Assembly: GCA_048013815.1 (NCBI GenBank)
Contig: CM106585.1
Span: forward strand, 4,526,001 to 4,590,000
Direction of reading: 5' to 3'
DNA length: 64,000 bases
Origin: Setoptus koraiensis
Lineage: Eukaryota; Animalia; Arthropoda
Shown: one piece after another, positions 7,310 to 45,870 of the stretch
How the letters are laid out: each line of letters starts with the position of its first letter
Position numbering within the stretch: the stretch's first letter is position 1
The notes under the pieces: model-generated
What the model was told of the DNA's origin: nothing
Databases searched by the model: none
What the model saw: the letters and a program-made list of their open reading frames with translations, nothing else
Position numbers and translations under genes: made by a program

Positions 7310-7322
7310 ACACACGCGCACG

Positions 7323-7360
<38 letters not shown>

Positions 7361-20868: not shown

Positions 20869-22857
20869 TCATATATTCTGTATGAATTTCTGTGATTTCA
20901 AGTCCGTTGTTTCAGGCTTGAGGTTTTCATTGTTGTTGTCGCTGTTGTTATTGTTATTGTTGTTACTGTTGCTGATATTATTGATAGGGCTGGTTACGAC
21001 ATGGGAGTTGGTTGAGTTCAGGTTTATTGTAGCTGTCGATAAAGTCACTGGGGCATTGATGCTTGAAGCTATAACTGTACCCAAATTCGATGCAGAAGCC
21101 CTCTTAGAAGTTACAAATGCCGGCTTAGCAGGTATTTGTGGCTTGTTGGCAGGTATAGGCGGTGGCACTGAGCGCTGATGAGAATTATTTCCGGAGGACG
21201 CTGCCATCGATTTGGAACGAGACGATTGCGATATAGGTGACTTGACGTATGGAGAACCGGACTGCACCCGTACGTTATTGCTGTCTGAACTAGGCACTGA
21301 CGAGACTCTAGATGCCAAAGACGATGATGATCTTGAGCCAGTAAGCGGAGGTGCTACAGCCGGTCGAATAATTGTGGACGTGTTGGCTGACGTACCGTTA
21401 TTTGTGGCTGCGTTTGAAGGAGATCGCTGAATCGTTGATGTTGAACGAGTCGGGGAAGATACTTTGCCGGATGATATAACCTGATGCACAGAAGTTCCTC
21501 TAGAGAAATTCATTGCACTTTGACCGCTTCCGGACGATTGTCCAGATTTTGTTGCTCTATTGACAGGTGAAGCACGAACGGTTTCATTATTTGAAACAGT
21601 TGATTTTGCACTCGAGATCAACAACTGTTGTTGCTCCAATTGAATTGCCAATTCTACATTACGAGCCTCCGCCAGGGCCAACTTTTCTTTGAGTTCGTTT
21701 CGTTCGCGCTCGAATTGTTCAGCTTGTCGTTTGAGTTCTAGTCCTAAAGTCTCAAGCTCGGCTTCCATTATTAATGAACGCTCGGTCTCGCCTTTTAAAC
21801 CTTCCACAACCTGATTTTGAAGGATTAGAGCTTTGGCGACCTCACCGCGCTTTTCACGTTCATCCAACAGTTCATTGATTAAAGTCAGTACTATCTTTTG
21901 TTTCGTTGATTTTTCTTCTTCCAATGCATTCTTGAACCTCTCCACTTGATGGAGCAAAGATGATCTTTCAGATAGAAAGAAACGGTTTGTCTCCTCATCT
22001 ATCTTTCTCTTGCGCTCTTTCTCTAGTTCTCTGGTCAAGTTGAAGCACAATTTTTCAGATTTTCCTAGCCGATCGTTCATGTACAAGCGATACCGCTTGT
22101 GTTGGTCGATTAAATCTTCTAGGTGGTGTATTTTAAAATTTAAATAATTTTTTGTAGACTGCACATCACATCTGTCATAATCGTATATATATACTGTGTC
22201 CTTTGATAATGCAAGGAGTGGGTTTTGTTCTATCATCTCTAAAGTTGCATTGTATGTGAGAAATTCATCTTCTTTGGTATATTCATTTGTATACTTTGAT
22301 TGGTTAATTGAGCAGTCATCTACGGCGTTCACTTGTTCATTGTTTTTGGCTGAAGATACACTATTTGGATCACAAGATCCGACAGAGGAACCGTCGTTGT
22401 TTCTAGGATCATTTGAGGTCTTTTGGAATTCGCTTAATTTATTGTACCTTTTTAAAATACTTGCTCTGCTTATCTGGATAGGGCGTGTGAGACGTTTTAG
22501 CTGCTCACATCTCAGTACAGCCAATGCTATATCTTTGGCTTGAATTTCTCCTTCGAGCATAGCCATTAATTGAAGGAGATCATTTTTGCTCAATTGTATT
22601 CTACCCTTCCCCTCAAAAATAATAGGGCCCTCTGATAATCCATGCGTTTCTTCCGGTACTTCAGTTTCTTCTGTCCCTTCAGCATATTCAACATCGTCAG
22701 TATCTGGTGTCTGTTGCATATCACTGTAACCTTGTCTGTTGTAATCGGACAACTGATTGCCCTCTTCAGATTTTAGTCGTTGTCCGATTTGTTTAGTAGA
22801 CAAAGAGAGTCTGGGCCGCATTGTTACAGTTGATGTAGCACGATTTTTGGTGTCCAT
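20869..22857 (-). CDS. CTTNBP2NL: Cortactin-binding protein 2 N-terminal-like (CTTNBP2NL/Nausicaa family), intronless
   Basis: CortBP2 domain LSKNDLLQLMAMLEGEIQAKDIALAVLR, NPLLALSKD, long coiled coil, S/T-rich tail with PPPIPANKP. Confidence 0.85.
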   Translation of the reverse strand: MDTKNRATSTVTMRPRLSLSTKQIGQRLKSEEGNQLSDYNRQGYSDMQQTPDTDDVEYAEGTEETEVPEETHGLSEGPIIFEGKGRIQLSKNDLLQLMAMLEGEIQAKDIALAVLRCEQLKRLTRPIQISRASILKRYNKLSEFQKTSNDPRNNDGSSVGSCDPNSVSSAKNNEQVNAVDDCSINQSKYTNEYTKEDEFLTYNATLEMIEQNPLLALSKDTVYIYDYDRCDVQSTKNYLNFKIHHLEDLIDQHKRYRLYMNDRLGKSEKLCFNLTRELEKERKRKIDEETNRFFLSERSSLLHQVERFKNALEEEKSTKQKIVLTLINELLDEREKRGEVAKALILQNQVVEGLKGETERSLIMEAELETLGLELKRQAEQFERERNELKEKLALAEARNVELAIQLEQQQLLISSAKSTVSNNETVRASPVNRATKSGQSSGSGQSAMNFSRGTSVHQVISSGKVSSPTRSTSTIQRSPSNAATNNGTSANTSTIIRPAVAPPLTGSRSSSSLASRVSSVPSSDSNNVRVQSGSPYVKSPISQSSRSKSMAASSGNNSHQRSVPPPIPANKPQIPAKPAFVTSKRASASNLGTVIASSINAPVTLSTATINLNSTNSHVVTSPINNISNSNNNNNNNSDNNNENLKPETTDLKSQKFIQNI

Positions 22858-24978: not shown

Positions 24979-26830
24979 ATGTTTAAACAGGTGAAAACAC
25001 TGACCTCTAAATTGGGTTACAAGCAACCAGCCACGGAAAACATCGCAAAATTTATCCTGGATGGTCTAGAAAAAAATAAAAACGAGACACTTATAGTAAG
25101 TGACCGGCTACATCTAGAAATTACTCTTTCTCACTCATCGCATAAACTATTTCTAATTTATTATATTTATCATTCAAACAACAGATTGATGCTGACAGTG
25201 GACGTCGCTGGACTGGTTCTGTATTGAAAAAGGCCGTCATACAATTGGCTAACTTCCTGACAAACGAATGTCAAATCAAGAAAGGAGATGTCTGCAGTCT
25301 CTTCCATACGCCTGATGATCGAGTCGCAATATGTATTCTCGGTATCACATTGGCCGGAGGCGTTACAAATTATCTCAGTGACAGCAACACCGCAAGTAAG
25401 CCATACCGAATACTGTATGACGAAACTGGTTGATTAACAATAATCGCAACACATAATGATCAATTTCTATTTTGCATTTCTATTTTGTCATCATAGGAGA
25501 ACTGCACGACACTGCAGTTGTTCTCAAGTCAAAGTTTCTGATTAGTGATCATGATACCTTGATCAGAGCTCATCCCAATTTGACTGATATCGAGAAGAAT
25601 TTATGTGTCATATCCACTAGTGAACCGGTCACGTCAAAGTTCACTAAGCTTGGTATATCCATACAGAAAATCCTCCAAAAACAATCAGAGGAACCCCACG
25701 AGCTGACTGATGGACTGAAGACTAGGATAAACGCAATCCAGCCTGATGACTTCGCCATAATTCAATTTTCTAGTGGAACTACGGGAAAACCAAAACCAAT
25801 ACCACGAACTAGCAAAAATCTAGTTCATCTTGTAAATTCAGTGGATCACAAAGAGATGATGGATCTGCACAGTGGAGCTGTGATAACAGGTTCATTGCCT
25901 ATAACTCATAGGCCTGGGCTGTGGGCTTTGTTGGCATCTGTCCATTGCGGAAGTACATTTGTGATTTGGAGCCATCTGTCTGACGTTGAGTCTGCACTGG
26001 CTACCATTGAAAAGTTCAAAGTTACCATATTTTCTTCCTCTCTACCATTCCTATCAATGTTAGGTAATGTGCCTGACAAAATTTTCGCAAAATACAATCT
26101 TTCCAGTTTGAAGCATGTAATCACCTCAGGAGCTAAGATCGTGCACGAGAATTTACCCAAAAAGCTCATGGTCCAATTCAATCTAGACAGTCTCAGACAA
26201 TGTTTTGGAATGACAGAATCTGGTTGGGTATTCCTTATTGAACAAACTTTGGCTAAGAATAACTATCTCTCAGTTGGACATGTTTGTCCTGGTATGGAAG
26301 CTAGGGTGGTTGATAGGAAGACCGGCGAAAGTGTTCCAGCCAATGAAAGAGGCGAAATTGCTTTGAAAGGTCCGCAAATATTCCCGGGTTATCTCACAGA
26401 TGTACCTGGAAAATTGAATAGAAATGATTTCGATGATGATGGGTGGTTCCGCATTGGAGATCAAGGTTACTTTAATGACGAGGAGTTAGTTTTCATTGAG
26501 GGTCGCTATAAGGAGAGCATGATCTTGGCAAATAATTACTTGGTGTTCCCTACAGAAATCGAGGCACTTATCAGTGAGCATCCAGCAGTGGAGGGTGTAT
26601 GTGTTGTTAAAAAGGAAGTGAAAAAGGATTTTGTGTATGATGTAGCGAAGGCATGTATCACACTAAAACACGATAGAAAAACTACAGAAGCAGAGATCAT
26701 TGAATTTTTGGCCAAAAGAGATTCGCAAGCGATCCTCATGGGCGGTGTTGAAATTCTTGATAAATTCCCCAGGCTAGGTAATGGAAAAGTGGACAAGCAA
26801 ACTCTAGCCAAATCCATCAAACATGATTGA
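24979..26830 (+). CDS. Luciferase/4-coumarate-CoA-ligase-like acyl-CoA synthetase; join(24979..25095,25185..25395,25497..26830), 553 aa
   Basis: Adenylation motifs FSSGTTGKPK, FGMTE, GEIALKGPQIFPGY, GWFRIGD, GRYKE and NGKVDK. Two GT-AG introns (89 and 101 nt) with consistent phases. The C-terminus is SIKHD, with no PTS1. Confidence 0.93.
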
Positions 26831-27370
26831 GATGTGTGTCAGCATTCGTACATGTCGACTCCTGCTGACGAAATGCGCGATATCTCGAGTTCTATTCTGC
26901 CAATTTTGGCGAACCATATAAAAACGATTTGAACAGACTGAAGTGCTCGTTAGATTAAAACGAAAACAAATTTGAAAAATTATCATGTTTTTGACACGTA
27001 CTCCCCCCCCCCCTTCCCCTAGATATACGATAGTCTTTCACCTAAAGTAATAGCTATTTTACTACATTTGTTTCAACAAGAAAATTTTGAAATGAAATTT
27101 ATTTTTTTTCTACCAATTGATCGGTCTAGTCGCATGGTCTCTAGCAGAATCTGCAGAAGTCTTGGTGCTTTAGAAATCTTGCTCAAAAAAAATATTTCAT
27201 GTTCAGCCTTCAAAGTTCCTGTTTCGGAGATTGTGGAATAATTGTAGTCTGCGAGTTACAGTTTGCTTGGAGATAAACAATTGAATTTAGTTGTACTTCA
27301 ACGTGTAAATAAATCTCAATATTTTATCAACCAGTTTGTCTAACGGGGTTTTAAGTGCCAAGTGGACGAA
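26488..27370 (+). repeat. Direct repeat copy 1 (~883 bp): ACS 3' end + convergent spacer + NRF-6-like 3' end
   Basis: Aligns end to end with 38105-38988 at roughly 95-96% identity by eye. There are 5 substitutions in the 343-bp ACS portion and more in the spacer. Confidence 0.97.
27287..27370 (-). pseudogene. Orphan 3' fragment (28 codons) of the NRF-6-like gene
   Basis: FVHLALKTPLDKLVDKILRFIYTLKYN* versus FVHLALKAPLDKLVDKILRFIYTLKYN* in the intact gene. Homology stops abruptly at 27370. Confidence 0.9.
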
Positions 27371-27904
27371 AACAGCAGCCGCATAATCTACATTGCGCCA
27401 CCCTCCCGATTTCAACTGGAAATATGAGTTCTGGATAATCGATGTTCATTGAGATAGCTCCAGTAGATGTAGGACTCATATTTTGAGTTATTGAGCCTGA
27501 GATTTGATGTGAATTGACCGTGGATAAGTACAGTAACTAACATAAATAAATTTGTGTGCATTTCCGCACGAGACCCGAAATACTGGAAGACCGCTAACTT
27601 TTCTCTTGTAGGAACAACTCCGATAGATTTTAACGAGCAATTTGGCCTAGCCTGGTCGTCGGCAAATAAACAAACTCATTGATTGCAAAGTATTGTAAGG
27701 TATTTATTTGTGTTGGAGTGTTAAGTGTTGGATGAAAGGCAATTTTTGGGTTCCATACTTAATCCAGTGAAATGCCTGGTGTTGGTTAGCAAAGGATGGA
27801 AATTGATCCCCGCGGATATTGAGAGATTGCCGAAATGCATGCCAGTGCTATCGCCGCATCAATTAATGATCAATATGGCGATCGCAAACATAAATAACGA
27901 GATC

Positions 27905-30900
27905 TCACATAACTTTATTTATAATGTTGACAATAGCTTCGGCGTTGTTCGCGAGAAAACTCTCGTGATTTCCAGGAAACTTGTACAAATCTATCCTTCC
28001 ATTGATTGACTGAATGAAATAGTGTAAACAAAGAAGTCAACGATTGTGGTTAGTATGATAGCTGAAGTCACTCAAAGTTATGAGATGATGAGACTCGCTC
28101 CTGATATAAAAAAAAAATTTCTCACCTTGGATAGCGAATAGTCATCGGCTGTTTTAACTCCATCCATATTAGCGATAACATCCTTTTGTGCCCTTATCAG
28201 TGTTGCATCACCAACGTAAGTCTTACTCGGCTTGTAGCTCAACAAGACTTGGGTCCGCCTATAATATCCCTCAATCGCGTCTAAAATATCATTCTGCTTT
28301 GATTTGTCGGTTATATTCAAAGAATGAGAGAGAATCTTGCAAGCTTCCTCAAATTTATCATTGAGGCCAGTCTTAATGGATGATAATTTTTTTAACACCT
28401 CCGCTTGATCGCAGGATCCTTTTGAATGATGCACCACGTATTCCTGGAGAAACTCATTCTCTCTTGATTCCAGCGCGGAACCTGAGAGCTTACCGAGCGA
28501 TTCCGCGACCCAAGGCGACATATCCAGCAGTATGTAGCGGCCTGGAACCAAATTCGTGCGACCCTCTCTTCGTCGATCTTGAATTAAAACTAATAGTTCA
28601 AATGCTATCGCACCACCATACGAATATCCAACAAGATCAACAACTCGAACATTGCTGGGATCCCTCATCTTCTGGTCACTCTTCAGTGTGGTCCAATTGA
28701 GATTTTCTAAATATTCAAAATAATATTCAGCGACTTCTGCGAACGACTTCAGCTTATTCAGCTTGTTTGTATAGTTGAGTCCAACGCATGGTCTAGAAAC
28801 ATTCTTACCAATCGTTTCCAATGGATCAAAAGTAGTATGCAGATGAGTGAGCACAAATACTGGCCGTGCAGTGGATGATATGGGTCGATCGTTCAGCATG
28901 AAGCAGTCTAATTTCGGCAGTTCGATTGGTGGATTAAATGCTGATTGTGTTCCGATCGATATTGAGAAGTTTGCCGCCTTGAGTGTTTCTACTTTCTTAA
29001 GAATCTCCGCATCATCCCCTCGTTTCTTGTTTCCAGAAGTTTTTTCTGTTTCTTCACTAGCGCCAATTTCTCTTATCCTATCGATAGTCAGAGCTCGTAC
29101 CTCTTGGGCCGTGAGAGATTGGCCAAACTCGCGCTCGATATATTGTCTTATCTCGACGGCCATGAGAGAATCTAAACCTAGCTCACCTAGTGTTGTTCCT
29201 CCATCCACCTTGCTGGCGTCTTTCACGCCCAGCACATGCAACACGGCCGCAACGAGATCTCCTCTAGTTGAGCCGCCAGACTTTTTATCTAGCAAAACAA
29301 GACTGGAACATATCGCAAATGGCGAACACAAGAGCTTAGCCAATGTAGAAAAGCACGATGGCATCCTTTGTGGAATGGTTCCACCAATAATTATGTCATT
29401 GCCGCCGAGGGTCTCGAATGCTATCCCGACGTCTCCAATGGCGCCCCATTGAATAGCAAGACCGTGTAGATTGTCTTGGCGACGTTGCTCGCAAACACGT
29501 TCCATGACTGAGTTGGCGTAACCGTAATTGGCTTGGCCTCCGTTGCCCTTGCCACAAGATACGGACGAAAAGGCTACAAACAAGGACATTTCGGGTGCAA
29601 CCTTTCGCGATATCTCGTCTAAGAACACGCACGCATCGGCCTTGGGCTTACAAACAAGATCGAAATCTTCGCTTGATATGTTCTCAAGTAGATTGTCCTT
29701 TAAAACGACGGCCAAGTGAAACAGACCACCGATTTCGCCATTTGGCGCTTGTTTCTTTGCCAATTTGAACAATTTCTCGATACCATCTCGTGTTGTTCCA
29801 TCTGCCATAGTTTTATCGACCACCAATAGTTTGCATTGTTTATTTTCCTCCAATCTCGACAAAACAACTTTCTGGTATCCAGTGCGTGCGCCCGACCGCG
29901 ATGTCACAACAAAATATCGACCACCAACTGATGCAAGCCATTTGATGAGTTCTAGTCCGAAACCACCAAGACCGCCTGTAATGATGTATGTCTTCGATGG
30001 ATCAAGCTCAAATCTAGGTATGGCTCGTAGGCCTCTTTTTGGCACTGATGAATTGGCAGAATGAGCATTCGGTTGTTTTTCTGGCTCGATTTCCACTAGA
30101 ATTTTCCCCATGTGTTTTCCTGTTGCCATGAATCTAAATGCCTCCTCAATTTTCTCTTTAGGAAAACAATGTTGCGGCAACGGCTTGATGTAGCCACTTT
30201 TTAGTCCATCTTGAAATACAGCCAGCCCTTGATCCAATTGTCGCATGAAATTGGGTGTCACTGTATCATAATCAAATACTTTGTCCAAGTGAACAGAATG
30301 GAATGTCTTGTTAATATCCAACATAGTCAATTCCAGTTTTGCATTCATAGCTTGATCGTATTTGCCTATTTCCAAGAATCGACCATTCTTCGCCAGACAT
30401 CTAACACTTGCTTGAAGTTTATCGTCCGCCAATGAATTGAGAACGAGATCAACACCACGACCTGACGTAGCCTCCATGATTTTCTGCTCAAATGAGCAAT
30501 CACGCGAGTTAAATATCTGGGCCTCACTCAGTCCGTCAGGATATTTTTGCAACAGAAATTGACGTTTCTCTTTGCTACCAACTGTGGTGAATACTTTCAA
30601 TTTATGATGCAGAGCCAACGTGATCGCTGCCTGACCAACGCCACCGGAGCCGGCGTGGATCAATATGGATTCGCCTTTTTGTATCTTGCCTCTAACGATT
30701 AGGGCCGCGATAACTGTCATGTAAGTGACAGGTAAAGTGGCTGCATCTTTTAGACTCATGCTGTCAGGAATTTCGAGCAATAGTGACGTTTTTTCGGGAC
30801 ATATAATCTCCGTGGCTATACATCTGCTTGGGATCATACCACACACTCGCTTTCCACTTGTGACATCAATTCCGGAAAATTCGAATCCTAACAAACAATC

Positions 30901-33900
30901 TTCGAGGGCTAATCTAATAGGTAAGGCATCCAGCGGCAATCGCCCAGTTGCCAACATAATATCTCTGAAATTGAGAGCCGAATAGTTAACTTTCACCAAT
31001 CGTTGTTTTTCGCCATCTACTGGATATGCCGTTGGCGTCTGATACCATTTGAAACTTGACAGGTCGCCCAGAGTTGACACATTTGCATAGGCTCTATGGG
31101 TTTCAATCAATTGTGATTCCCCACTTTCACACTTGTCGTCTGTATCGAAATAATCGTCCAATGTGATGTGCATAAATGATCCCCATTGTCCATCAGAGTT
31201 GATACAGTTCCAGAAAAGATCTTTTTTCAGTGCAACTTGGAAATTCGCGCTCTCTCTTATTGTCTCGATCGTCACGTCTTTCTCAAACTTTGTCTTGAAC
31301 GAATGACAGTCGAAAAAGCAGCGCAGATTGGCCAGGGTACCCACCTCTCTTTTGAGACATTGCACCAATCCCACGATACCGTTGAATGGGTTATTTTTCG
31401 TGGCGACACCGCAGAGCCATATAGTTTCCAATTCCTTCTTTTTTCCTTTGTCTGTTTCCTCCTGCTTTAACTCATCCTTCAATTGATTCAGCCAATTAGT
31501 ATAATTGCCATGCTGAACATGTATCAATTTATAAGCTTTGTTACCACAACTTCCTGATTGCTTCTTAGAATAAGTATCATTCTCTTTTAAACTAGAATCA
31601 ACCCCACAACCATTTCTATACAAATATAACGCACATCCGGTGGTGTCCATCTTTTTTCCTATCAATTCAAATTTGTATCGTCTCGCTTCGATCTCTAATA
31701 GCCGATTTCTGGCCTCACATGAACTTTGCGCCTGTTGCATTGCCTTGATGATATGATCATCAATTTCTTTTGATGGAACACTAGTTTGATTGGAGGAGTT
31801 GGTCTTAGCAACATGCTTCAATGCCAGTATAAATCTTTCTGCGAGGCTCAATTTGTATCGTGACATTACCAAGAGAAATCCGCCTTTTCTGATTACCCTC
31901 GCTAAATTGTTGAGTGTCGGAGATAGCTCATACGAATCTTCTTCGTTGATCGTGGTCGCATGACAACTTGTGTCGGATAAACAGACTGCATCGATGGGGC
32001 GATCTCTATTAATCAATGATAAAAGAGATGATTCACTTTCATGGCCGATGTCTTTCAGGATGTGCAATTTGACATTGTCATTTAGATTTTTAAAGTCATT
32101 TGGAGTCGGATGAGATAAAGTGTAGCTGAGTTTCGTTTGTGATGAAATGCTACTTATGAGTTTTTCCAAGTGTCCATAATGAATTGTATTGCCACTATTG
32201 ATTTCTAGTAGACGCAAATCACTTGTAAATTGGCAGCAGTTCTGAACGATTGTTTCTAGCATTGGTCTGGTGAAACGTTCAGTGCTAAAAGTAGAGAGTA
32301 TCATATCTTCACTGAAAATTTTTTCGTGTTTAATCATGGACTGAATCGTAAACGATATCAATGGTTCATTCTTGGTTTTTTCCAGAGAAGATTTCGATGA
32401 ATGGCTCAGCATCGAATCAAGCAATGACAGGAGCGTAAATGGCGAATTCTTGGCCAACTCCTCTGCTTTAGAATTGTCCGGTTGTGATTGTTGTTGACCA
32501 TTTTCTGTCGTTGTTGCTTTGTTCAATTCCTCATGACGAACAATTAAATGATCGCTGAGATATTGCTCTATCTCTTCGCTCTCTACATACTTAATGCCAT
32601 TGCGACTAATAGATTTAAGCAACCCGTTTGTGTCGGCTAACCTCGAGACAATGTTGTTACAAATCTGTTCATATCGCTCTCTGGATTGATTTTTGCTTAA
32701 TTCTAGATCTTTTACGGGTTCCTCGATGTCCAACAAAAATTTATAACTCTCCAATGTTGGCTCAGTCAACTCTCTTCTATTGACTGGCATGGCTTTTATT
32801 CCTCTCATCTCTATCCCATCAGTGATGACAATGCCTAGGATTGGATCGCAATAAGTATCAAAGATGCATTCTACTGATCGCTCTTCCTGATTGGATTGAT
32901 TGTTTTCATTATCGGTCGGTTCAATAGTGCTCTCTTTTGATGATTCTGTCACTATATAATCAACCTCGTTCTTACCAAAAAATTCTTTCACTTTCACGCC
33001 TGACTCGTGTATTTTACCAAGTATCACATCAGGATTGAATCTGATATAATCAAATCCAGTTGGTAAAAATAGAGCACCTTGAGTTGCGTGTGCGCAAATG
33101 GACAAAAATATTGATTGCAAGATGTTGTCAGTCAGAGCTACGAGTTGTCCGTTAAATTTGACCTTGACATGACGTCCGTTGCTCGAAGCCGATTGAATAC
33201 AACGGAATGTTTCACCATAGTCATATCCGTGCACCCTGAATTGTTTGTAGACATCATCATGACTCAGCGATTGTTCATTGTTTTCGTTGCTCAAACTATG
33301 AGCTATATCATCATACAAAAGACCCTTTGGATTGACTTCCGGAGATTTGGCGAAGCCATCAACTACAACTTGGCCACCCTCAGATACCACGAAATAGTCT
33401 GTCGCTGGCTCAAAAATTACAGATAGATCCACTGTTTTTTCTCCTAATATCACTGCTCTATGCAATCTAACATCTCGGAATTCGATAGGTTCATATGGTA
33501 TGACTAATTCACCGTCTTCTCCCCTTCTTTCGGTGAAGCTTATATCATGCATTCCTCGTTTGTTACATGAGAATACATACCACACAACGCATAAATATCC
33601 AGTTGCAGGATTCAGTACTCGGCCCTCCAGTGTATGACCTGAAAGGTATTTTTGGTTTTCATCTAGAAGATTGATGGGTTGTACCACGCGATTTGATTTA
33701 TCTGAAAAATAGTCAGGATATCTTGGAACACAGAACGGAATTGAGTGGTCCCATTTCATTAAAGAACTGATAGATGGCACCTGTTTTCTGACTGGTAATT
33801 TGATTTTCGGATAAAATGAACTCAATGTTGGATTAATGCCCATTTGAAACAGCTTGCCTATTGTGATGAAGAAATTCAGTAAGGGATTCTGGTCATTCTT

Positions 33901-36841
33901 TTTCATCAGTTTCGCATAAGATAATGGCTGATTGCTCGGTATGACTGTTCTGACAGTCGACTCAAATATTGCGTGGGGCCCAATTTCGATGACCACCTGG
34001 TCTGCATGCTGGATTCTTTCAACAGCCTGTCTAAAGTTGACTCTTTCGCACAAATTAGTTGCATAGTATTCTGCATTCGCCATTTTTAGAATTACTGAAT
34101 CATGGTCCTGACAGACACTAGAAAACCATTTATGTTCATTCCTGCTGTAGTCTGTGCCCGGATGCAACAATTTTCGTAAGTTTGCTATCAATTTGTTTTT
34201 GATATCGTCACGCATTATATGGGGATTGTGGAGTGCAAAATCAATGTTCAAGTCGGTGCACTGAATGCTTCCGCTATAATGCTTGCCAAGATATTGCAGA
34301 AACTCTCTGACGTGTTGTTTAGTGCCCGAAACTGTGACAGATTCTGGCCCGTTATCGCACGAAATGCATACAGTTGATGACGATTTTTGCTTCTTTTTTT
34401 CTTCAATGTAATTGTCTATGTTTTTTTGCGCTTCGTCAAAACCTAAACTAATCGCTACCATTGAACCTTCAATGAGATGCGCATTGTCTTTGAGCGTCGA
34501 AGCAATATGGTAGGCTAAAAGAATTGTTTCACGTTCGTCGAAAATTCCATCCGCATAAGCACACGCAAACTCTCCTACTGAATGACCAAGGATTCCACCT
34601 GAGGGTAAGATGTTTAGATGTGATTTTAAGATGTTGGTAAAAGCTATCTGAATAGCGGTTATTCCGACAAACGCATCAATTATTGCGAAGGTGTCGCCAT
34701 TTGCCGTTTCCAGTGATCGTATGAGATCGTATTCGAATGGCTTCAGTATTTCTTGTAATCTTTCAATTGTAGACCAAAACTGACTGAAATCTCGCATGCC
34801 TAACCCCATGCCTTGCCACTGCGAGCCCAAGCCCGGGTACACAAAGTAGCAAGCTACCGGTGCGCTATCTTGCAGATGGTGCTCAGCTCGACCAATATCC
34901 AACTTGTTGTGATCGGAATGACTGTTCGGCGAACTCAACTTACATTCGCAAATAGATCTATAGATTTCTGTTTGGGTTTTCAGGTCCAGTATGACAAAAC
35001 CACGCGCTCTCATCAATCTATCAATTTTGCCACTGCAAAGCGAATCTGTCAGGGCAAAAAAATCTCTTGTCAATGCTTTTTCTTTGACTCCTTCGGACAT
35101 GATAGAGTTGAAGAATGTCTCTAAACCCTGTTCGTGCCTGCCGAACATGAGAACTAAGCGATGACGTTCATTTGTCGCACTAAAATCAACGGTGCCGTCG
35201 TCTTTGAATGGCTCCACGATTGGCCTGTGATTTGAACGCAATATGGCATGCACGTTGGCCCCACCAAAACCATAACAGCTCAATGGTATGATGTGGGTAT
35301 TCAATTTTCGTTTCTCTGTTACAATCTGCACGCGTCCATCAGCAAGCGCTTCAATGTTAGGATTTGGCTTGTTAAAATTTAAACTTTTGTATATCATTTC
35401 ATTGTCGAGCATGAGAGCAACTTTTGCCAATGCACATAAACCACTTGCTACCTCCGAGTGACCCATATTCGTTTTGATGCTAGTGAGTGATAGCGGTCCA
35501 ATAGTTCTTTCGTTCGATGCATCTTTCGGACAATAAACACTCGATATGGCCTCGCACTCTATGGGATCACCGGCGGGTGTTCCAGTTCCGTGGGCCTCAA
35601 TTACTTCAACGTGATTTGAATGTAATCCGACTAGTGAATTTTTTGTTTCTCTTATCAGTGCTCCCTGTGTAATGGCCGCTGGAAAGGTGATGCCTTCTTT
35701 CTTGTAACCGTCCGCGTTCATTCTTGTAGCTAAAACCGTGCCGTATACTCTAAGAGCGGCATGCTTGCGTTGTAGAAAAACCGAAACACAAGCCTCGGAT
35801 TTGCAATATCCATCCACATCAGCGTCACCAAAACGAGTATAGCCAGTGGGTGATAACATTTTTAGTTTTGCGAATACTATGGTATTTTTAGGATCCAACG
35901 CTAAATTAACAGCGCAGACAATGGCCTGGTCAAGTTTACCGTGTTGGAAACTCAAAACTGCCTGTTGAAAGGCTCCGAAACCAGAGGCGCAGGCTAGATC
36001 GTATGCACAGGCTGGGCCTCGAAAGTCGTAGTACCTAGCGATTGCAGTTGCAAATTGAACGCTATATCCGCCTCCATCAAAATGGAGATCGTCACGCATT
36101 GCCTGCTCGGTTTCGCTCGTGAGAAAACTCAAAAAAATTCCAGTTTTAGTCCCTCGCAGGGAGGCGGGATTGACACCTGATAGGGGATTGGAATTGTTTG
36201 TTAGATTCGAACTCTTAGATTCGTTGCAGATTGAAGTACTCGGCTGCGCCTCAAGTTTGCATGCGAGAGTCTAAACTAGTTATCATAGTTCATTCAAACC
36301 TGCTGAGATTGAGATTTTTAGAATCAAACAGAGACGATTACTCACCTGAGTCCAAAATGGATTCGTAGACTCTCTCATATAACAATCTCAACTGGGGGTC
36401 AACAATTCTGTCCGCTCCGTAACCAAAAAATTCTCCATCAAATCGCCATACATCCTTCATGCGACCAGCCCTCGGTGGTAAATCCCACACTTGACGGGGA
36501 AAGCGAACCTCATCATTCTCAGTGCACATATCGCAGTTGTCGGTTAATAATTGTTTCAGTTCATCCATATTATCGGCGTTAGGGAAATAACCAGCCAACC
36601 CTGAAATTACAACATCGGTATCTGGAATGCTAAAAGGATCAACTATTTTCTCCGCTGCTTTTTTTGCTGATTTCATTGTAGTTGTTACAGTTTCAGAATA
36701 TTGCTGATTTTTCTCATAACTGGAACCATTTTCAGAGTGCGCCATTTCAAAGCCATCAATGGCATTCTCTGTGGTGTCCATTGAATTGTCGATCGGGTTA
36801 CTCTCACCCAACTGTTGAAGGTCTGTCGATAAAACAGGCAT
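27905..36841 (-). CDS. FASN: Type I fatty acid synthase-family megasynthase (KS-MAT-DH-pseudoMT-ER-KR-ACP-TE); complement(join(27905..28009,28126..36176,36346..36841)), 2883 aa; atypical MAT
   Basis: KS DLAC/EAHGTGT/NMGHSE; MAT GHSVG; DH HTLEGRVLNP and D in TDNILQ; ER HAGSGGVG; KR GGLGGFG and GQANY; ACP GLDSL; TE GYSYG, LLD and GNH in the last exon. Introns of 169 and 116 nt with matching phases. Confidence 0.95.
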
Positions 36842-38104
36842 TATCGATGTGTGATATGCTCTACTGTTGGTTGTGTTTATTTCTTTAGAGTTTATTTTTG
36901 TAATTGTTCTCTATTAGGAGAGCTCTTCCATGAAAATCTCGAGACACTTTCGTTATATACAACTCACTGTATAAGTATTGAATTTAGCTTGTCGTATTCA
37001 TCCAGTGGTGGGTTTCAAAATAAGATGCATCTACTTATAGACAATCATTGATGAATACAGCAACAAAATACAAATAATCAGAGTGAAACGGCCGAGTGAA
37101 AGATCTAAACATGGACAACATAATCGAAGTGTGAGCACGAGTTAAAAAAAAGTTCACCCTTAAAAGGCGAAGTCTGCCTCGAATTTCCGAATGGAAAAAT
37201 TTATCTCTATCTTGAAGAGGCGCCTCAGTCTCCGTTATCATTGTCAATCTCCAATTATAAAGCGACTAAAACTATTTTGCTTCCAATCCCTCGTCTTGCC
37301 ATCAAGCAACAGTCACTCCGAAATATCAGACTATTTTTTATTTCAATGTGCTGCACTAGAGTTTACTTAGTCAATGATTTCGGAGTAACGAGGGGAGCAT
37401 TTCATCGGATTCGATCGTGTCCGAAAAAAATTCAAAATTTAAGCGATAATATTGGTACGTATGAGAATAATCCATGCAAGCAGAGCATGGATTTTGCGTG
37501 ATGCTTACTCGTCGAATGTCTTTAACAGCGCCCATACAATTTAATGTAATACTCGATTGAGCCATCAAACCGGTTAGTGTGGAAATCTCAACTTGAGATA
37601 AATATCTTGATTGCTTTATCCGATTCTTATGATCATCTTTGCTAGTGACAGGTTCGGCATTTCTGACGTAATGTCTGCGTACTGTCTGGAAAATAGATTT
37701 TTTCTGGTTCTTTTCATAGGAAGTATGCGTTTTTTTTGAGTGGATCACCATATTTTCACCATTGCCATTTTACATTCTATGTAACAAGAGGTACATTTCA
37801 CCAGATCATATCGGTATTCGACAATCTCTGGTGTAATGTATACCAAGATAAATTTTATGTTGTCAAAATATAAAAAATGATTCTGTCTGACGGTTACTTT
37901 GTTGATATCGTGCTCATTCCCAATTCTGTTTGACGAACTCATTAACATCCTCCTCAGTAGTAGTGATATTATGAAACCGGTTAGAGTGAATCTGATTTCG
38001 TAACATATCATTAACGATAATGATATTAAGCGTTTAATTTGACACTCTTTTACAGATATTGCCTATTGGTCCAATAAGTAGCTAATACATCTTATAATTA
38101 GTTC

Positions 38105-38447
38105 AGTTTTCATTGAGGGTCGCTATAAGGAGAGCATGATCTTGGCAAATAATTACTTGGTGTTCCCTACAGAAATCGAGGCACTTATCAGCGAGCATCC
38201 AGCAGTGGAGGGTGTATGTGTTGTTAAAAAGGAAGTGAAAAAGGATTTTGTGTATGATGTAGCGAAGGCATGTGTCACACTAAAACACGATAGAAAAACT
38301 ACAGAAGCAGAGATCATTGAATTTTTGGCCAAAAGAGATTCGCAAGCGATCCTCATGGGCGGTGTTGAGATTCTTGATAAATTCCCCAGGCTAAGTAATG
38401 GGAAAGTGGACAAGCAAACTCTAGCCAAATCCATCAAACATGATTGA
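38105..38447 (+). pseudogene. 5'-truncated duplicate of the acyl-CoA synthetase (C-terminal subdomain only)
   Basis: Matches the last ~113 codons of the ACS with only I>V and G>S changes. The frame and stop are intact, with an in-frame ATG at 38136. Confidence 0.85.
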
Positions 38448-38988
38448 GATGTGTGTCAGTATTCGTACATGTCGACTCCCGCTGACGAAATGCGCGATAT
38501 CTCGAGTTCTATTATACCAATTTCGGCGAACCATATAAAAATGATATGAACAGACTGAAGTGCTCGTTAGATTAAAACGAAAACAAATTTGAAAAATTAT
38601 CATGTTTTTGACACGTACTCCACTCCCCTTCCCTTAAATATACGATAATCTTTCAGCTAAAGTAATAACTATTTTACTACATTTGTTTCAACACGAAAAT
38701 TTTAAAATGGAATTTATTTTTTTTTTCTATCAATTGATCGGTCTAGTCGCATGGTCTCTAGCAGAATCTGCAGAAGTCTTGGTGCTTTAGAAATCTTGCT
38801 CAAAAAAAAACATTTCATGTTCAGCCTCCAGAGTTCCTGTTTCGGAGATTGTGGAATAATTGTAGTCTGCGAGTTACAGTTTGCTTAGAGATAAACAATT
38901 GAATTTAGTTGTACTTCAACGTGTAAATAAATCTCAATATTTTATCAACCAGTTTGTCTAACGGGGCTTTAAGTGCCAAGTGGACGAA
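38105..38988 (+). repeat. Direct repeat copy 2 (~884 bp)
   Basis: Counterpart of 26488-27370; its right end is the true 3' end of the NRF-6-like gene. Confidence 0.97.
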
Positions 38989-41978
38989 CAACGATAGTGC
39001 CAATACTGTCGGCGCAGCGGCGCAAGCTTCTTTCGACATCTTCATAAGACTAAAAGGACCAAGGCCGTGGTAATCGCTAAAGACAAAAAAATAAATAACC
39101 TCCCATTGAATCAAATACACACAATAGGTGATGCGACTACACACAATCCAGAGTTTATGTCTTAGCCATCGTGACTGTTTGGCAACGTCTGTAGATAAAC
39201 GTATTATCACAATTAGGTTGCAGAATATCCAAGCGACTATCATGCATGGCAATTGTAACGACACAATAAATTTTCTCAGATTTTCATATTCATTATCAAT
39301 GCCCATGATACTATCGTAGAAATCAGTTGCGATGACTATCAATCCCGGCATAGCAAATATAGGCAGGTGTGCCCAAAGAGCCAATTTGAACCAATTGCCT
39401 CGCATCCAACGGGGCCAATAGTTTTTGTTTTTCTGCGCTGATTTCACATTTAACAGCTTTCCTCCGATCCTTTTTGTCTCATCATCCTGTTTTAACTGCT
39501 GCCCTTGAAAAGTGTTATACTCATAGATAATGATGCCTGCTAAAACTCCGGCCAATGCCTGTGGCAACCTGAAGAATAGGTCGCGAAGAATAGCAATGTC
39601 ATAGTACTTGGCATCCCTAACAAGTGTGCATCACGAATATGACAGGTGACAGGTAATTGTTAAGGTTAATTGTTATCGTCTGTGGCATTGAGTGTTTAAT
39701 TTGATCAGTTTAAGCTCTAGTTTACTTACACTGCTATTGCTATTAGGAAGTACCTTTGGAATGCACGACTGTCGCCAGCGGAACTGTTGTACATCCACTC
39801 GAACGTCAGGTAAAACGAAACTGACATAAATAGGGCCACCAGGGCCACTCTAAAACGTCGGAATCTTTTCACATAATTGATTTGATGGTCATTTATTGAT
39901 AGATGGATTGTTGTTAGATGGAAGAATAGATAATATATGATTATAATATAATGTAATTGGGCCGGTTTAGATTGACATAACATGTTTACTTACCTCAGCA
40001 TGAGGTAGGTGAGGGGCGGTAGTAGAAGGAATACTCTGAGTAATGCTTCCAGGAACCAGGCTTCGACTTTGCATGGCAGAATGATGTGGTGCTTAAATTG
40101 ATTGAAGGGCAATATATAATGATACCATTCGCTGGTTTGTCTGCACGCTCCCCGGAACGAATGTCTATTAGTCCCGTAGTCCCACGAAGGTCCACTCCCT
40201 AACAGGGGTGCCAAAGAATAACTGAACCAGTACAGTATCATGTAAACGGGGCACATCTTCAAGAACAAGTTTACCTGAATTGCCAAATAAGCTAATGGAT
40301 TGACAAGATACCTATAGTGCCTCTGTGCATTGTTCAATATTCTCATAACAGTAAATCCGAACATTACGCCCGCAACAATGAAGAATGTATCCAATATCAG
40401 TGGAAACGATTCTAGAATGAAAATCATTCTTGATGACAACAAACCAATCATCAGACCGGGTGTCGTTATTTTGAAAGTGTTTAGAAGAATGGTGTGGCCA
40501 AAAATTAACGAATAAGCACAAACAACTTTGATCATGTTGATTGGCACCAAATTAACGTGTTCCGTTCGATCAATTATATTGTCGACAGACACAAGCTCTC
40601 GGAAGCTCTGCTGAAGTGAAAATATTCCAATCAATTGGTCTATGAAATCACTTTTATAATTTGTCTTCAGCTGGCTCTTAGTCTCATCGATAGGCCGATT
40701 ATTGCCACGATTATCCACCCCGGCCTCATTAGGGGCGACAAATTTTTCCATTTCAGTCAATGGCAACATCCCCCTAGGATCGTAGTTGTCTATTCCAACA
40801 ATATCACTCTCAACGCGATCTTGTTGTTTATACGCCGTTTGTTGTTGTTGCTCAAAAGCGACAACAAGTTTTTCAGGTTTAGGCTGCCGAATAAAACAGT
40901 CATAAATAGTGACCGAGAAAACAATCGATAGCCACACAACGCCGAAACCAATGAGCGCCCATCCGGCTGGCTGCAACTGACGTAACGGGCTACTCTCATC
41001 TGGCAGACAATATAATTCAACCATTTTGTACCTGTCTTTTAAGTGTTCGGGAAAATTCATTAGCAGTAGCTTCTCCATGATCTCGCCATTTGGGCCTCCA
41101 TTAGCTGTTGCTGTTGACCAAGATTGGGTATCGCATGTCTCGGGCAAACACATTCCCGCCAATATTCTTGGCTTTGGCACGAATGTGTCGTTCGTCGGCC
41201 AACTGACAGACACCAATTTGCCATAACAATAACGAGTCTTGATTATATTTGTGGCTTTGTTTGTTTCGCCTCCATGGCTCACCGGCTCATCATCCAACCG
41301 ACTGTTGTTGTCGTTTTGAATATCAGTAAGATCGAATTGGAATCTGAGACATTGCTCATAAGATCCGAACCACATTGATTTTCCCAGATAAGAGGCAGCC
41401 TCGGGACGACCGAATGAGTCGATATAATTGGACAGGTTGAATTGAATTTCACCGTTGCTAAACATCAATTTAGTGTTGCTTTCGGGCTCGTTGCTTGTAA
41501 GTTGCTTAAGTAGCCATTGCAAATGTTGCCGGCACAGCAAATTGTTGACTGGTAACCCACCCGACACTGCTAGATCCTCTGGAGATGAATAAGTGAATGG
41601 GTCAGTAGCATAAAAACTAAAATACTCGAATGATCTCAAAGCGTGATACTGCAACAATTCACCCTGTTTCAGCTTAGTGGGGCCAATTGCCATTCTCACT
41701 AGATCATGTGGATTGATGTATTCTTCCATTCGTATCAGACTATTTGATGTTTTATTCCACAGGAATGGAAATCTTTTGATCTTTTCATCTTGATTCCCGA
41801 AAATGTGTCGCTTATATCTGTGGAAACTTTTGTTGTCTATTAAGTTGTCAGTTGATACTGTTCTTGCTGCTTCCTCTTGGCTTCTTGAATCAACTTGTGG
41901 CGACTTTGACGAACAAAGATTCGCCTCTATCACTAACAAGGTGATTGAAATAAACGTTAATCCGCGTAGAAATGACAT
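38905..41978 (-). CDS. Nose-resistant-to-fluoxetine-6-like protein (signal peptide + NRF domain + acyltransferase-3 membrane domain); complement(join(38905..39616,39730..39864,39994..41978)), ~943 aa
   Basis: Signal peptide; NRF domain IDSFGRPEA...WFGSYEQC and GMCLPETC; AT3 K-x10-H, DTFF and SRITYCVYL. GTAAGT donors at 39993 and 39729, all phase 2. An alternative in-phase acceptor would start exon 3 at 39568. Confidence 0.88.
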
Positions 41979-42301: not shown

Positions 42302-42990
42302 AAAAAACTCAATGAGAGGCAACGCAATCTAGACAATGTTTCTTTTTTTGACACATTGTGATAATTTTGATAGATATGCCTCCCGATTGCGACGAAGAAT
42401 TTATTGATTAGGTTGCTCAATGTAGCTTTAGATGCCGTTGGTTTTACTCGTCTTCAGAAAGAATCTTTCTTGTGTCTGGTCGCTGTTGTGGGCTCTCCTA
42501 TGCTGATAGGATCGAACGCGTCGTTAGAGACATAAAAACCACGGATAACGCGTACAAAACATGCTGCAGAATGAAAACAAGTTGTCGCCAAGCAATCACG
42601 ATATTTACATTGATAATCGATCGCCCGGGTCGAAAAAAAAAATACGCGACACAAGCGATTTGTTGACTGCCTTGGTGTCATATTTGTTATTACAATTAGT
42701 GGACAAAAAAAACTCACTGAGAGTCTCTCAGTGAGAGGGTGAAGCAATCAAGAAAACATTTTTTTATACATTGCAATGAAGACATGCTTTTTGATTGCGA
42801 CGAAGAATTCATTGATTGGCTTCTTTCTCGTGTTTGAGATCGTTATTGCAGGCTCCTGTGCTGTTAAGATCGACGTTTCAGCGACATAGAAAGCCACGGA
42901 TAACGCGTACACAAAAATTGCAGAATGAAAACAGGTTTTAGCCGACGAATCGCGATATTCACATTGATAATTGATCGACCCGAGTGGTAC
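42302..42990. repeat. Degenerate tandem duplication (~400-bp unit: 42302-42704 and 42705-~42990)
   Basis: Shared blocks gattgcgacgaagaatt, ccacggataacgcgtac, tgcagaatgaaaaca and atatt(t/c)acattgataat. Confidence 0.8.
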
Positions 42991-44209
42991 ACAAGCTTTC
43001 GTTGCTGATTTTTTTCCGAGTGTTAGAACTGGTCGACAATAACTGGTTGCATGATATAACATACTGATCTCGGATTGGTTCGATGGAATGTAATTTACTA
43101 CTAGTCGGCGCTTCCGATTCTTTTTGGCTAAGCTCATACATGTATGTGATGGATGCCTTTCCTTGATGGTAAATTACATTGTATCGAATTCAGATGACAA
43201 ATACGCCTTTCTTTGACATTAGCCAGAGCACCATGTACTCTGTGGAAATTTTCCGATACCTTCAGTACTCTGGCGTCGTCGTTGTTGTTGTCGTTGTGGT
43301 AGCAGACTGATCACTCGATGAGCTTGGTTCTGATGAGGCAGAGCCCGACTAGGTGATGGCAAACGAAGATCTAGGGACACCGCTACCATCCAGATATCTG
43401 TGACGATGACATGATTGTGACGTTGGCACGTTATGGGCCGACGCTCGAATCGTCGTTAAACGACAAGTCAGGCGACAATAGATGCTCGAGATTTGCGCAA
43501 TAATACTCCTAGCTACATACATGTACTGGAATTTAAATAGAAATCAGAACAGTTTGATCCTTGATAGATGACGCAGGCAACTACACACCTTCACTGATTG
43601 TCGATTACTTTTCTCTCTTATACACATCACATGACATGCCAGTGACAAATCAGATGCGAATTTATGTCACTGATGTTGCATAGATGTCATGGGACTCCGT
43701 GCAACATCCCTTGGAACTGCTTCCCAATTTTGAGTAGGAGGACTGTCGGCGGTCTCTCGATGTGATAATGTAGAGCAAAGCGCTGCGGATGACACAAACA
43801 TTTAATTGGTGAGTCAAATGACGGGGTTCAATCGTACGTTCTGGAGTTGCTGCGACTCCTCTTCATTGATACTATTCTCGTTACGTGTTGATAGCCTGTT
43901 GATTAGACTTGTATACATAGTTGAAAAATCTTTGCACGAATGCCCCATGTACCGTAAGGGCCATCTCTAATTGATTTAATCATGCTTTTCTTCTCCTTGG
44001 CATAGTGTTTCTTTTGAGACCCTCCAACAACTTCGAGCCACCTCTTCAACTTAGAACTTATTGTGTGCAATCAAATCAGCCGTTATACTATCAGATAATT
44101 CGCCCACTCTAGTTTGGTTGACGTATATATGAGGCTCGTCCAGTTTGGGCCACTCGAATAGCTTGCAATCGATTTCATCGTCATCATCTCTCGTGAACTT
44201 TGTGGACAT
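42959..44209 (-). pseudogene. Probable decayed protein-coding gene of unknown family
   Basis: ATG at 44209 opens MSTKFTRDDDDEIDCKLFEWPKLDEPHIYVNQ...HNKF*VEEVARSCWR. A long S/T-rich frame from ~43500 to 42959 has only scattered stops. No family was recognised. Confidence 0.35.
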
Positions 44210-44290: not shown

Positions 44291-45870
44291 TTTCATGCTT
44301 TGAAGCACCACTCAAATATGATAGCTGCCACTTCATCTCAATCCCACTTTAATCAATTGTCAGTTGACAAATTAATTAGCTGATCTTATCGATCATTGGA
44401 TCGCATATAATATGCGGTAGTTTTTGAAACTAAACATTTCAAAGTTGGCGCTACTTTATTGAGCCTCAAAAAATAAACAAACGCATCTGTTCCATGCGGA
44501 TGATGCCAGTCCACGCGTAAACACACCAGAAGTGAGTGTCGAACTCGTGGAAAATACATGTATCATTTGTTTGATACAGTATTTGAGATTTCCTTATGCA
44601 ATTTTACAATTACAGACTTCTAAATATGTATAGACTTATCCTCCTTTGCAGATGATCTTATACACTAGCAATACTCCACAATTGATTCGCGAGCCTAAGC
44701 GACCTAACGAAACATCAACTTTTAAATTATTCGGACGAGACAAACGCCCATCCAGAGCCTCCAGTCAATTAGGCAGTAGTTGGAGCGAATAAATCAAAGA
44801 TCGCCAATCATCAACAAAATGGCCAAGAGGAAATACAATCCCTATGGGGAGTTTGTCAGGGCCGAATATCTTTCACTCAAAAAGTCCAATCCTAAATTCA
44901 ACAAGCCCATGAGTGCTATGTTCGGTAATCCGGCGATAAGAGAAAAATGGAAGAGCAGTGACGAAGAGACAAAGCAAAAGTTCAGAGACATTTCCGTGAG
45001 CAAAAATGAAGGAACCTACGTCTATCACACTTCCCATCAGAATAAGGGCCAGGGATTCCAACAGCCAGACGAAATGAGAAACGATTTCATGGCAAGCCAG
45101 AAATTATTCAATCGTTGCGAAGATATCATTCACTCCAAAACTTACGAGGAACTGCTTGAGGCACCACTTTATTCATTTAGTTGCAATGTTATGTGCGCAG
45201 AAAATGAATCCGAAGAACTCTACATACCACTGGAAATCGCAATTTATGCATATACACTCAAGAACGGTGCACCTAAAGACAAGCCTGTCTACCTGACATT
45301 CATCAATCCAGGGGAGCCACCAGTAGGCAAAATGAATGAAGCTAAAAAACATTACGAAGATACAAGGCATAAAGTACCATTTGAGCCCTTGGCGCCTTTC
45401 TTGCCATATGCTAGGACAGACTATCGCGAAATCTATAAAGAGATCCTAGAATATGTTGGAGAGGAAAGAATTTTATTGTGCCAGCATGCTGATTATATTC
45501 AACAAATTTATGGCGTCCTCAAATGGCTGGCCAAAAAGGCTAATGAAAAACCCTTCACAAGTACCATTGGTCTAATCCGACCTCAGACAGCTAATGAATT
45601 GCCTGCCGCCGATAGCTGGCGTATATGTGATATCTCGGAGTACGCCTTCCAAATGGGCAAACGTCTCGGTTCGCCTTTGCCGGCATCCGTGTGTATTGAG
45701 ATGCTCTTGGAAAACATGAGACTAGCTTATGCAAATCATTTAAATTGCGAGTGGCATAGTTTGCCCCAAAATGAAACACAATGGTGCGCTAAGTCTTGTT
45801 CAGTACGAACTATTGTTAATCTGGAAAACCTATTCGATTGGTTCAAGGATACTTACTCGAAAAAAGAAAG
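44291..45870 (+). repeat. Segmental duplication unit 2 (Maelstrom gene plus upstream)
   Basis: Colinear with 17791-19560 in the same orientation, ~26.5 kb apart. Confidence 0.92.

Follow-up and report, generated by a model that had tools for sequence, protein, structure and literature searches.

A locus of the mite Setoptus koraiensis raises the question of whether three neighbouring genes encoding complementary enzyme classes form an evolved biosynthetic cluster or share their location by chance. The locus is part of a window of 64,000 nucleotides from contig CM106585.1 of the assembly GCA_048013815.1, where the region 24979-41978 contains the genes of a 4CL/luciferase-like acyl-CoA ligase, of a megasynthase resembling animal fatty acid synthase (FAS) and of an NRF-6/acyltransferase-3-type membrane protein, which we refer to as NRF. 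An original prediction made for the same DNA had interpreted this arrangement as the activation, extension and tailoring steps of a joint pathway. We find that the synthase gene was recently inserted between a ligase and an NRF gene that already existed as a convergent pair. On balance, we thus favor an interpretation in which the adjacency is a young and lineage-specific by-product of genome rearrangement, and hence a chance neighbourhood rather than an evolved biosynthetic cluster. The inserted gene itself is a fast-evolving paralog of FAS, which belongs to a mite-specific lineage and very probably does not serve as housekeeping enzyme.

The origin of the arrangement is recorded in a direct repeat of about 883 bp, whose copies are located on either side of the synthase gene at 26488-27370 (copy 1) and 38105-38988 (copy 2). 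Their alignment encompasses 886 columns with 28 mismatches and 5 gap columns, corresponding to an identity of 96.3%. The order of elements is identical in both copies: the terminal 343 bp of the ligase coding sequence are followed by about 456 bp of intergenic DNA and then by the final 84 bp of the NRF coding sequence, which is located on the other strand. The live part of copy 1 is its ligase portion, which constitutes the genuine 3' end of the gene (to 26830) and is followed by the intergenic DNA and an 84-bp pseudo-copy of the NRF 3' end at 27287-27370. In copy 2, the live part is the NRF portion, with a pseudo-copy of the ligase 3' end at 38105-38447 preceding the intergenic DNA and the genuine 3' end of the NRF gene (from 38905). 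Since both composite copies join the ends of both genes, the ligase and the NRF gene were formerly convergent neighbours, between which a segment was inserted with a duplication of its 883-bp target. This inserted cassette extends from 27371 to 38104 on the minus strand and comprises 10,734 bp, with the synthase as its sole gene accompanied by about 0.5 kb of downstream and about 1.26 kb of upstream sequence. Small open reading frames found in the cassette upstream of the synthase do not contain any Pfam domain. Because the repeat copies have diverged by merely 1.2-1.5% in their coding parts and by 4.8%, plus indels, in their intergenic part, the insertion is recent. As judged from these values, it would be recent relative to the roughly 50% protein divergence that separates S. 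koraiensis from the nearest available species, although gene conversion may cause it to look younger than its real age.

The described structure is recovered in three DNA sequencing runs (X1, X2 and X4), which originate from three samples of three different studies. In all of them, contigs branch exactly at positions 38105 and 38988, where the loose ends continue with the sequence of the ligase at one junction and with that of the cassette's far end at the other. The sequencing depth of the repeat is about twice that of its flanks (115 versus 65, 201 versus 106 and 27.5 versus about 9 in the three runs), and the other letters encountered on the repeat are all those of copy 1, which are carried by DNA contigs placed at copy 2. 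Conversely, the depth of the cassette about equals that of the NRF gene, and the cassette is thus present in a single copy and does not represent a minor haplotype. In a separate observation concerning the region 37413-37730 within the cassette, a contig leaves the sequence of the window at position 37645 in X1, X2 and X4 and continues with unrelated letters (ATATTTTGAATACG...) that do not match elsewhere in the window, while the depth of X2 drops to about 6 at 37400-37599 compared to about 100 around it. This loose end looks like a structural polymorphism or an alternative haplotype upstream of the synthase.

The described features can be accommodated in a simple mechanism, which would start from an ancestral state with the ligase on the plus strand and the NRF gene on the minus strand facing each other, their stop codons about 456 bp apart. 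The insertion of 10.7 kb of DNA with a single intron-containing gene, that of the FAS-like synthase, would then have duplicated the 883-bp target stretch, which is the outcome predicted for staggered breaks that are subsequently filled in. Such a process would leave both neighbours intact, with each copy of the repeat retaining a dead fragment of the other neighbour. Staggered-break duplications are known from rearrangement breakpoints, such as those of inversions in Drosophila. The putative event in S. koraiensis resembles the latter in that hundreds of base pairs of the target are copied around a relocated segment while neighbouring genes remain intact, but it differs in that the duplicated sequences are direct repeats around a segment with a single gene, which was inserted rather than inverted.

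Other routes by which the cassette might have reached its present position were considered and discarded. Carriage by a transposon finds no support, as neither terminal inverted repeats of at least 40 bp nor a tRNA or Rfam element were found in the cassette, and as a second copy of the cassette flanks is missing from the window. A retro-copy is rejected based on the two introns of the synthase gene, from which it follows that the cassette has moved as DNA. Similarly, a segmental duplication that could be suspected from the equal length of two open reading frames of 662 codons (20869-22857 and 39990-41978) was dismissed, since their sequences are unrelated.

A cluster of functional relevance might be conserved in related organisms, and we have thus read twelve related gene contexts, which include six of synthases, four of ligases and two of NRF proteins (P0241 and P0242) and which mostly reside on contigs from metagenomes or sequence read archives. 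Adjacency of any two of the three genes is found in none of these twelve contexts, and the three genes, whose synteny in related mites had been proposed as a check of the cluster, are thus not found together in any of them. The clade-C synthases (a lineage defined below) are located in diverse surroundings: P0019 is part of a 109-kb contig that also harbors a DEAD helicase, Gpi16 and a reprolysin, P0004 neighbours Ada3, P0006 OBG and L17, and P0002 EamA, while nothing recognizable is found within 4.4 kb upstream of P0001. The clade-B synthase P0024 is placed between an ABC transporter and an importin. In none of these six cases does an AMP-binding, NRF or AT3 gene adjoin the synthase. The orthologs of the ligase reside next to Spaetzle and UPF0172 (P0129), a PDZ-arfaptin gene and P450s (P0121) or PIG-U (P0131 and P0126). 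In the assembly ERZ761561, a clade-B FAS, a clade-C FAS and the ligase are distributed over three contigs of 110, 45 and 20 kb, which from their similar coverage of 600-690x are assigned to the same organism, and in ERZ27241733, the clade-C FAS on its 109-kb contig is separated from the ligase on another contig of 40 kb. Finally, in SRR33593474, the sample of the closest relative, the best matches of the synthase (48% identity) and of the NRF protein (52%) are found on different contigs, where the 4.4 kb upstream of the synthase are free of an NRF gene and the 710 bp that follow the NRF gene downstream are free of a ligase.

The surroundings of the ligase orthologs also bear on the state of the locus before the insertion. 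PIG-U is convergent to the ligase ortholog in two species (L011:7778-9085 and L016:11853-13160), and a PDZ-arfaptin gene is found near the ligase ortholog in L010 and L016. This microsynteny is lost in the window of S. koraiensis, where the neighbour prior to insertion was the NRF gene. As PIG-U takes the convergent position in two other species, these observations suggest that the adjacency of ligase and NRF is itself derived in the S. koraiensis lineage.

All three genes are intact. As in the original prediction, they follow each other without disruption, and their identities had been assigned correctly. The ligase gene (24979-26830, plus strand) consists of three exons (24979-25095, 25185-25395 and 25497-26830), which are separated by GT-AG introns and code for a protein of 553 residues without internal stops. 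It contains the Pfam domains AMP-binding (4e-47) and AMP-binding_C, and its motifs, including an SSGTTGKPK loop, GMTE and a C-terminal GK, which are all present, place it into the ANL superfamily. The protein aligns from end to end with orthologs of mites encoded by intronless genes at 55-61% identity, and its nearest relatives of known structure are luciferases, the plant enzyme 4CL2 and Drosophila CG6178. Its C-terminus SIKHD does not conform to the peroxisomal targeting signal PTS1, in agreement with an earlier claim, and the same signal is absent from all of about 39 orthologs in mites (0 of about 39), which points to the predicted cytosolic location as a probable trait of the family.

The NRF gene (38905-41978, minus strand) is located 2 kb upstream of the synthase on the same strand, while the ligase is convergent with the synthase. 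Its three exons (41978-39994, 39864-39729 and 39615-38905) code for a protein of 943 residues with a signal peptide and about 10 hydrophobic segments. The N-terminal domain characteristic of NRF proteins (PF20146) is detected with an E-value of 1.1e-8 and a score of 35.9 bits compared to a cutoff of 27, whereas a Pfam search of the exons did not identify a match to Acyl_transf_3 (PF01757) even at E = 1. The threshold for this domain is passed by the ortholog P0241, which is 52% identical, and by the relative P0242. The S. koraiensis protein aligns across the same region and retains the GH motif in the first transmembrane segment and the DTFFxxxG motif, and these relationships make the presence of an AT3 domain likely. 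Upstream of the NRF gene, we noticed short direct repeats at 42372-43137 with a spacing of 354-408 bp and an identity of 81-84%, which cover two open reading frames on the minus strand (42454-42747 and 42748-43137) and could reflect a small tandemly duplicated gene, for which no Pfam match was obtained.

The synthase gene (27905-36841, minus strand) had been described as a single open reading frame, but it is instead composed of three exons (36841-36346, 36176-28126 and 28009-27905), which together code for a protein of 2883 residues with the domain order KS-MAT-DH-(psiKR)-ER-KR-ACP-TE. Pfam recognizes KS, KAsynt_C_assoc, Acyl_transf_1, PS-DH, FAS_pseudo-KR, ADH_zinc_N, KR and PP-binding domains. 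The TE obtains a weak Pfam score, yet its triad of Ser, Asp and His is complete. Its histidine, as part of a GNH motif, is encoded by the short last exon (28009-27905), and as this exon is not part of it, the long open reading frame on its own mimics a degenerate TE. Mapping of motifs shows that catalytic residues are kept throughout the protein, including Cys228, His361 and His405 of the KS, His1013 of the DH, Ser2502 of the ACP and Ser2684, Asp2717 and His2864 of the TE, and that the nucleotide (NADPH) binding motifs of ER and KR are intact. Both the order of domains and their catalytic motifs thus agree with the complete synthase proposed earlier.

To place this protein within the family, we calculated a maximum-likelihood tree from 81 FAS sequences (2611 columns, LG+G4 model, quick search), which covers FAS without the insect references of animal FAS-like polyketide synthases (AFPKs). 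The FAS proteins of eriophyoid type distribute into three clades, in which all groupings are supported by SH-aLRT values of 100%. Clade A (n = 14) is characterized by short branches, contains the Aceria protein A0A6G1SJY0 and groups beside the canonical FAS of other acariform mites. Clade B (n = 18), which includes the Aceria protein A0A6G1SKN2 and two proteins of Fragariocoptes, is the sister of clade C (n = 23), whose long-branched members include the synthase of S. koraiensis, which joins P0001 at 48% amino acid identity. Aceria tosichella contains a canonical clade-A FAS and a clade-B paralog, and members of clades B and C are both found in ERZ761561. The location of clades B and C beside the canonical FAS of acariform mites suggests a lineage-specific origin. 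The view of the synthase as atypical is thus borne out by its position outside of the canonical clade A. As an observation in its own right, a protein from Tetranychus urticae annotated as fatty acid synthase isoform X2 (P0114) and a protein from Oppia nitens (P0116), both long-branched and lacking the arginine discussed below (Arg606), attach below clades B and C, and P0114 has lost the Ser and the His of its acyltransferase (GIDYIGE and VTVTND). An Arg-less FAS lineage may thus be older than eriophyoids, although the joining of P0114 and P0116 is unreliable and possibly reflects long-branch attraction.

The relation to canonical animal type I FAS, whose human, pig and mouse representatives (PDB: 3hhd, 2vz8 and 5my0) include the best match of known structure, is manifested in the shared seven-domain architecture and the retained catalytic residues. 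Unlike these proteins, the synthase is not orthologous to FAS and it is about 370 residues longer, and in a comparison of the KS-MAT region with human FAS it scores 441 bits compared to 939 bits for the canonical FAS of Aceria, a gap that is somewhat overstated since the query lacked about 95 N-terminal residues of the KS. The mollusc enzymes EcPKS1 and EcPKS2 (PDB: 9cq1 and 9ctk) are equally animal FAS-like synthases that have diverged from FAS. Their scores with the S. koraiensis protein (358 and 346 bits) are below that of FAS, and a canonical mite FAS is, with 807 bits, closer to EcPKS1 than the S. koraiensis synthase is to any FAS. The divergence of the synthase was thus independent of that of the mollusc AFPKs. 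AFPKs were described as FAS-like proteins that share the architecture of FAS but fall outside of the canonical clade. They are widespread among arthropods, where they have been connected with cuticular hydrocarbons and pheromones (Lin et al., 2024; PMC10764717). Among them, LmFAS1 and LmFAS3 from Locusta, members of the AFPK ar-clades 2-3, were implicated in the formation of cuticular hydrocarbons, whereas mites go unmentioned in that study (Lin et al., 2024; PMC10764717). If the working definition used by these authors is applied, the synthase is an AFPK-grade FAS paralog. With arthropod AFPKs it shares the FAS domain order including the TE, the status as lineage-specific paralog, the reduced similarity to canonical FAS and a presumed specialized role in lipid metabolism. 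It differs from them by its origin in the lineage of acariform mites and by a MAT that is devoid of Arg606 throughout clades B and C. Our literature search on FAS-like genes of mites or eriophyoids did not retrieve any relevant report.

The clades also differ in the substrate pocket of the MAT, whose active-site region in S. koraiensis is encoded at 34228-34581 on the minus strand, with Ser698 at 34581-34579, Ile723 at the position of Arg606 at 34506-34504 and His815, as part of an ALHN sequence, at 34230-34228. In animal FAS, R606 holds the carboxylate of the extender unit and its removal alters specificity (PMC6954729). This position is occupied by Arg in 38/38 canonical sequences, including those of clade A, and by Leu, Met or Ile in 41/41 members of clades B and C. 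Further differences concern position 499, where the canonical Met is replaced by Leu except for V/M/Y/I in 9/23 clade-C sequences, position 605, where the canonical Trp is replaced by His, Arg, Gln, Lys, Asn or Tyr, and positions 684 and 740, where Ser and Val are replaced by Asn and Cys. At position 682, the canonical Phe is exchanged by Leu in clade C only. The S. koraiensis protein combines the replacements R606I, M499L, W605H, F682L, S684N and V740C, and the proposal of a non-canonical MAT, with Ile at the place of Arg606 and ALHN instead of AFHS, is thus accurate. By contrast, the catalytic residues Ser581 and His683 of the MAT are kept in both clades. The recurrence of the same pocket substitutions in 41 sequences next to preserved catalysis indicates a change towards a different but selected function rather than decay, and we did not find any report in the literature of a MAT without Arg606 across entire clades of FAS.

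From these replacements, an altered loading specificity of the acyltransferase would be expected in clades B and C. The MAT of the synthase could prefer non-carboxylated acyl-CoA primers, in which case the extender would be obtained in another way, or alternatively, the binding of the carboxylate could have been taken over by the polar or cationic residue at position 605 together with Asn684. The nature of the substrate shift and the class of the product can be assigned with similar caution: the enzyme is probably fully reducing and would release by its TE a saturated acyl product for a specialized use such as a cuticular or secreted lipid. It would carry out this task independently of its present neighbours. 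As the loss of Arg606 is far older than the neighbourhood, it cannot be interpreted as an adaptation to the adjacent ligase.

Expression of the locus was investigated in one run, X7, which has the properties of RNA. The sequences missing from its contigs are exactly 36345-36177, corresponding to the first intron of the synthase, and, in contig 27, 39993-39865 and 39728-39616, corresponding to both introns of the NRF gene. The depth is about 16-21 for the synthase and about 17 for NRF, and both genes are thus transcribed. At the 3' end of the ligase, the depth is about 4, with a contig of low depth over the repeat containing the letters of copy 1 at 3/5 diagnostic sites. This contig probably corresponds to the 3' end of the ligase, although its assignment is ambiguous between the two copies of the repeat.

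The surroundings of the three genes conform to a compact genome with intron-poor genes. The window also contains Rpn13, PTHB1, a gene resembling those of G-protein coupled receptors and two paralogs with a Maelstrom domain, and the closest named relatives of the ligase, the synthase and NRF are from the eriophyoid mites Aceria tosichella and Fragariocoptes setiger. The Maelstrom paralogs (18313-19632 and 44780-45892) are 71-75% identical, encoded on the plus strand at a distance of 26 kb and flank a block consisting of a CortBP2-like gene, the ligase, the synthase and NRF, as a further sign of local duplication activity. The G+C content is elevated to 53-67% at 1-2000, 6001-10000 and 52001-60000 compared to a background of about 40%, and the latter region coincides with an open reading frame of 1784 codons that shows a weak match to 7tm_1 only and contains low-complexity repeats.

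The described data have to be weighed against interpretations that would assign a different meaning to the structure of the locus or to the synthase. An artefact of assembly or a rare structural haplotype could be suspected from the collapse of the repeat copies in short-read contigs, none of which spans the entire repeat, but it is hardly credible in light of both types of junctions in three DNA runs from separate samples and studies, the equivalent depth of cassette and NRF with about twice that value in the repeat, and the 28 differences between the copies, as would be found in real paralogous DNA. Only marginally better is the prospect of an ordinary housekeeping FAS producing C16 and C18 fatty acids, which we regard as very improbable. 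It could account for the full set of canonical domains in their usual order, including the TE, but it conflicts with the fully supported separation of clade C from the canonical clade, the coexistence of a canonical and a clade-B protein in Aceria tosichella, a similarity to human FAS that is half that of a canonical mite FAS and the absence of Arg606. Also improbable, if to a lesser degree, is a decaying or crippled pseudo-enzyme with a MAT unable to load malonyl, for which the genomic position would be irrelevant. Such decay would be in line with the loss of Arg606 as anchor of the carboxylate (PMC6954729), the long branches of clade C and the related P0114 from Tetranychus with its missing acyltransferase Ser and His. 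It is at odds with an open and correctly spliced reading frame of 8.6 kb, with the preservation of catalytic residues in KS, MAT (Ser/His), DH, ER, KR, ACP and TE and with pocket substitutions that are conserved in 41 sequences of two clades, which points to purifying selection on a changed function.

The most serious competitor is a young but functional cluster of three genes, in which the move of the synthase would have been favored by selection and where the ligase would make a non-carboxylated acyl-CoA primer for loading by the Arg-less acyltransferase, the synthase would extend and reduce it, and the NRF/AT3 protein would transfer or export the product. The locus does unite physically adjacent genes of complementary enzyme classes, all of them intact, with the synthase and NRF being spliced and of similar depth in X7, and both neighbours were precisely preserved by the insertion. 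A MAT pocket without malonyl anchor would fit an acyl-CoA primer, and it is improbable that a single gene would have two lipid-related neighbours by coincidence. Against such a cluster, no pair of the genes is linked in the twelve related contexts, and as old genes with broad conservation in these mites, the ligase and the clade-C synthase are nevertheless unlinked elsewhere, so that a partnership would not need linkage. The loss of the arginine in all members of clades B and C far predates the adjacency, which is recent and looks mechanical in origin, the orientations of the genes do not allow for a shared promoter, and NRF-6 proteins have no demonstrated role in the tailoring of FAS products. 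Coincidences of this kind are also to be expected when very many windows are scanned. The same three kinds of components are found in microbial ligase-PKS-acyltransferase clusters and in the nemamide pathway of nematodes, which employs PKS-1/NRPS-1 and ACS enzymes, and the genes for nemamide synthesis are themselves not known to be clustered. Unlike in the microbial examples, the co-localization in S. koraiensis is not conserved and was created by a recent insertion. We thus consider a selected young cluster as unlikely, and the specific version of a newborn metabolic cluster, in which a cytosolic ligase would prime the Arg-less synthase and NRF-6/AT3 would hand on its product, as slightly less likely still. 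The inference of an activate, extend and tailor cluster is not sustained, given the recent insertion, the lack of synteny and the lack of a shared promoter.

Several points weigh against the chance neighbourhood and the non-housekeeping assignment that we prefer. The empty site with the ligase directly adjoining NRF is seen in no other genome, the closest relative being at about 50% amino acid identity, and at this distance a young cluster would be compatible with the lack of synteny in relatives. That a single gene would land exactly between the genes of an acyl-CoA ligase and of an AT3-type protein is unlikely as a coincidence, and we roughly estimate a chance of about 1% that both neighbours are lipid-related. 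An Arg-less acyltransferase would be expected of a synthase that is primed by an acyl-CoA made by the ligase, and the single RNA run X7 may contain transcripts of all three genes, with the signal of the ligase being ambiguous. Finally, the non-housekeeping assignment presupposes another, predicted FAS gene in the genome of S. koraiensis, such as a canonical one of clade A.

With respect to its wider meaning, the locus provides a note of caution, since the adjoining of complementary enzyme classes in a compact and heavily rearranged animal genome is no evidence for a pathway. In this case, it is the flanking repeat that reveals the origin of the adjacency of ligase, synthase and NRF, and the insertion provides a clean natural example of the relocation of a single gene with a long target-site duplication. 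If a newborn cluster were nevertheless present, we would be observing its assembly by gene relocation as it happens, at a stage where the 883-bp duplication of the target can still be recognized. The more interesting result, compared to the neighbourhood, is the conserved change in the MAT pocket. In a pair of paralog clades found across mites, this pocket has been rebuilt at the residue that serves malonyl loading in animal FAS while catalysis was preserved, which raises the question of how a full FAS without R606 would load its extender or which other substrate it would load instead. In this way, the known diversity of animal FAS-like synthases is extended to plant-parasitic mites, about whose lipid chemistry hardly anything is known.

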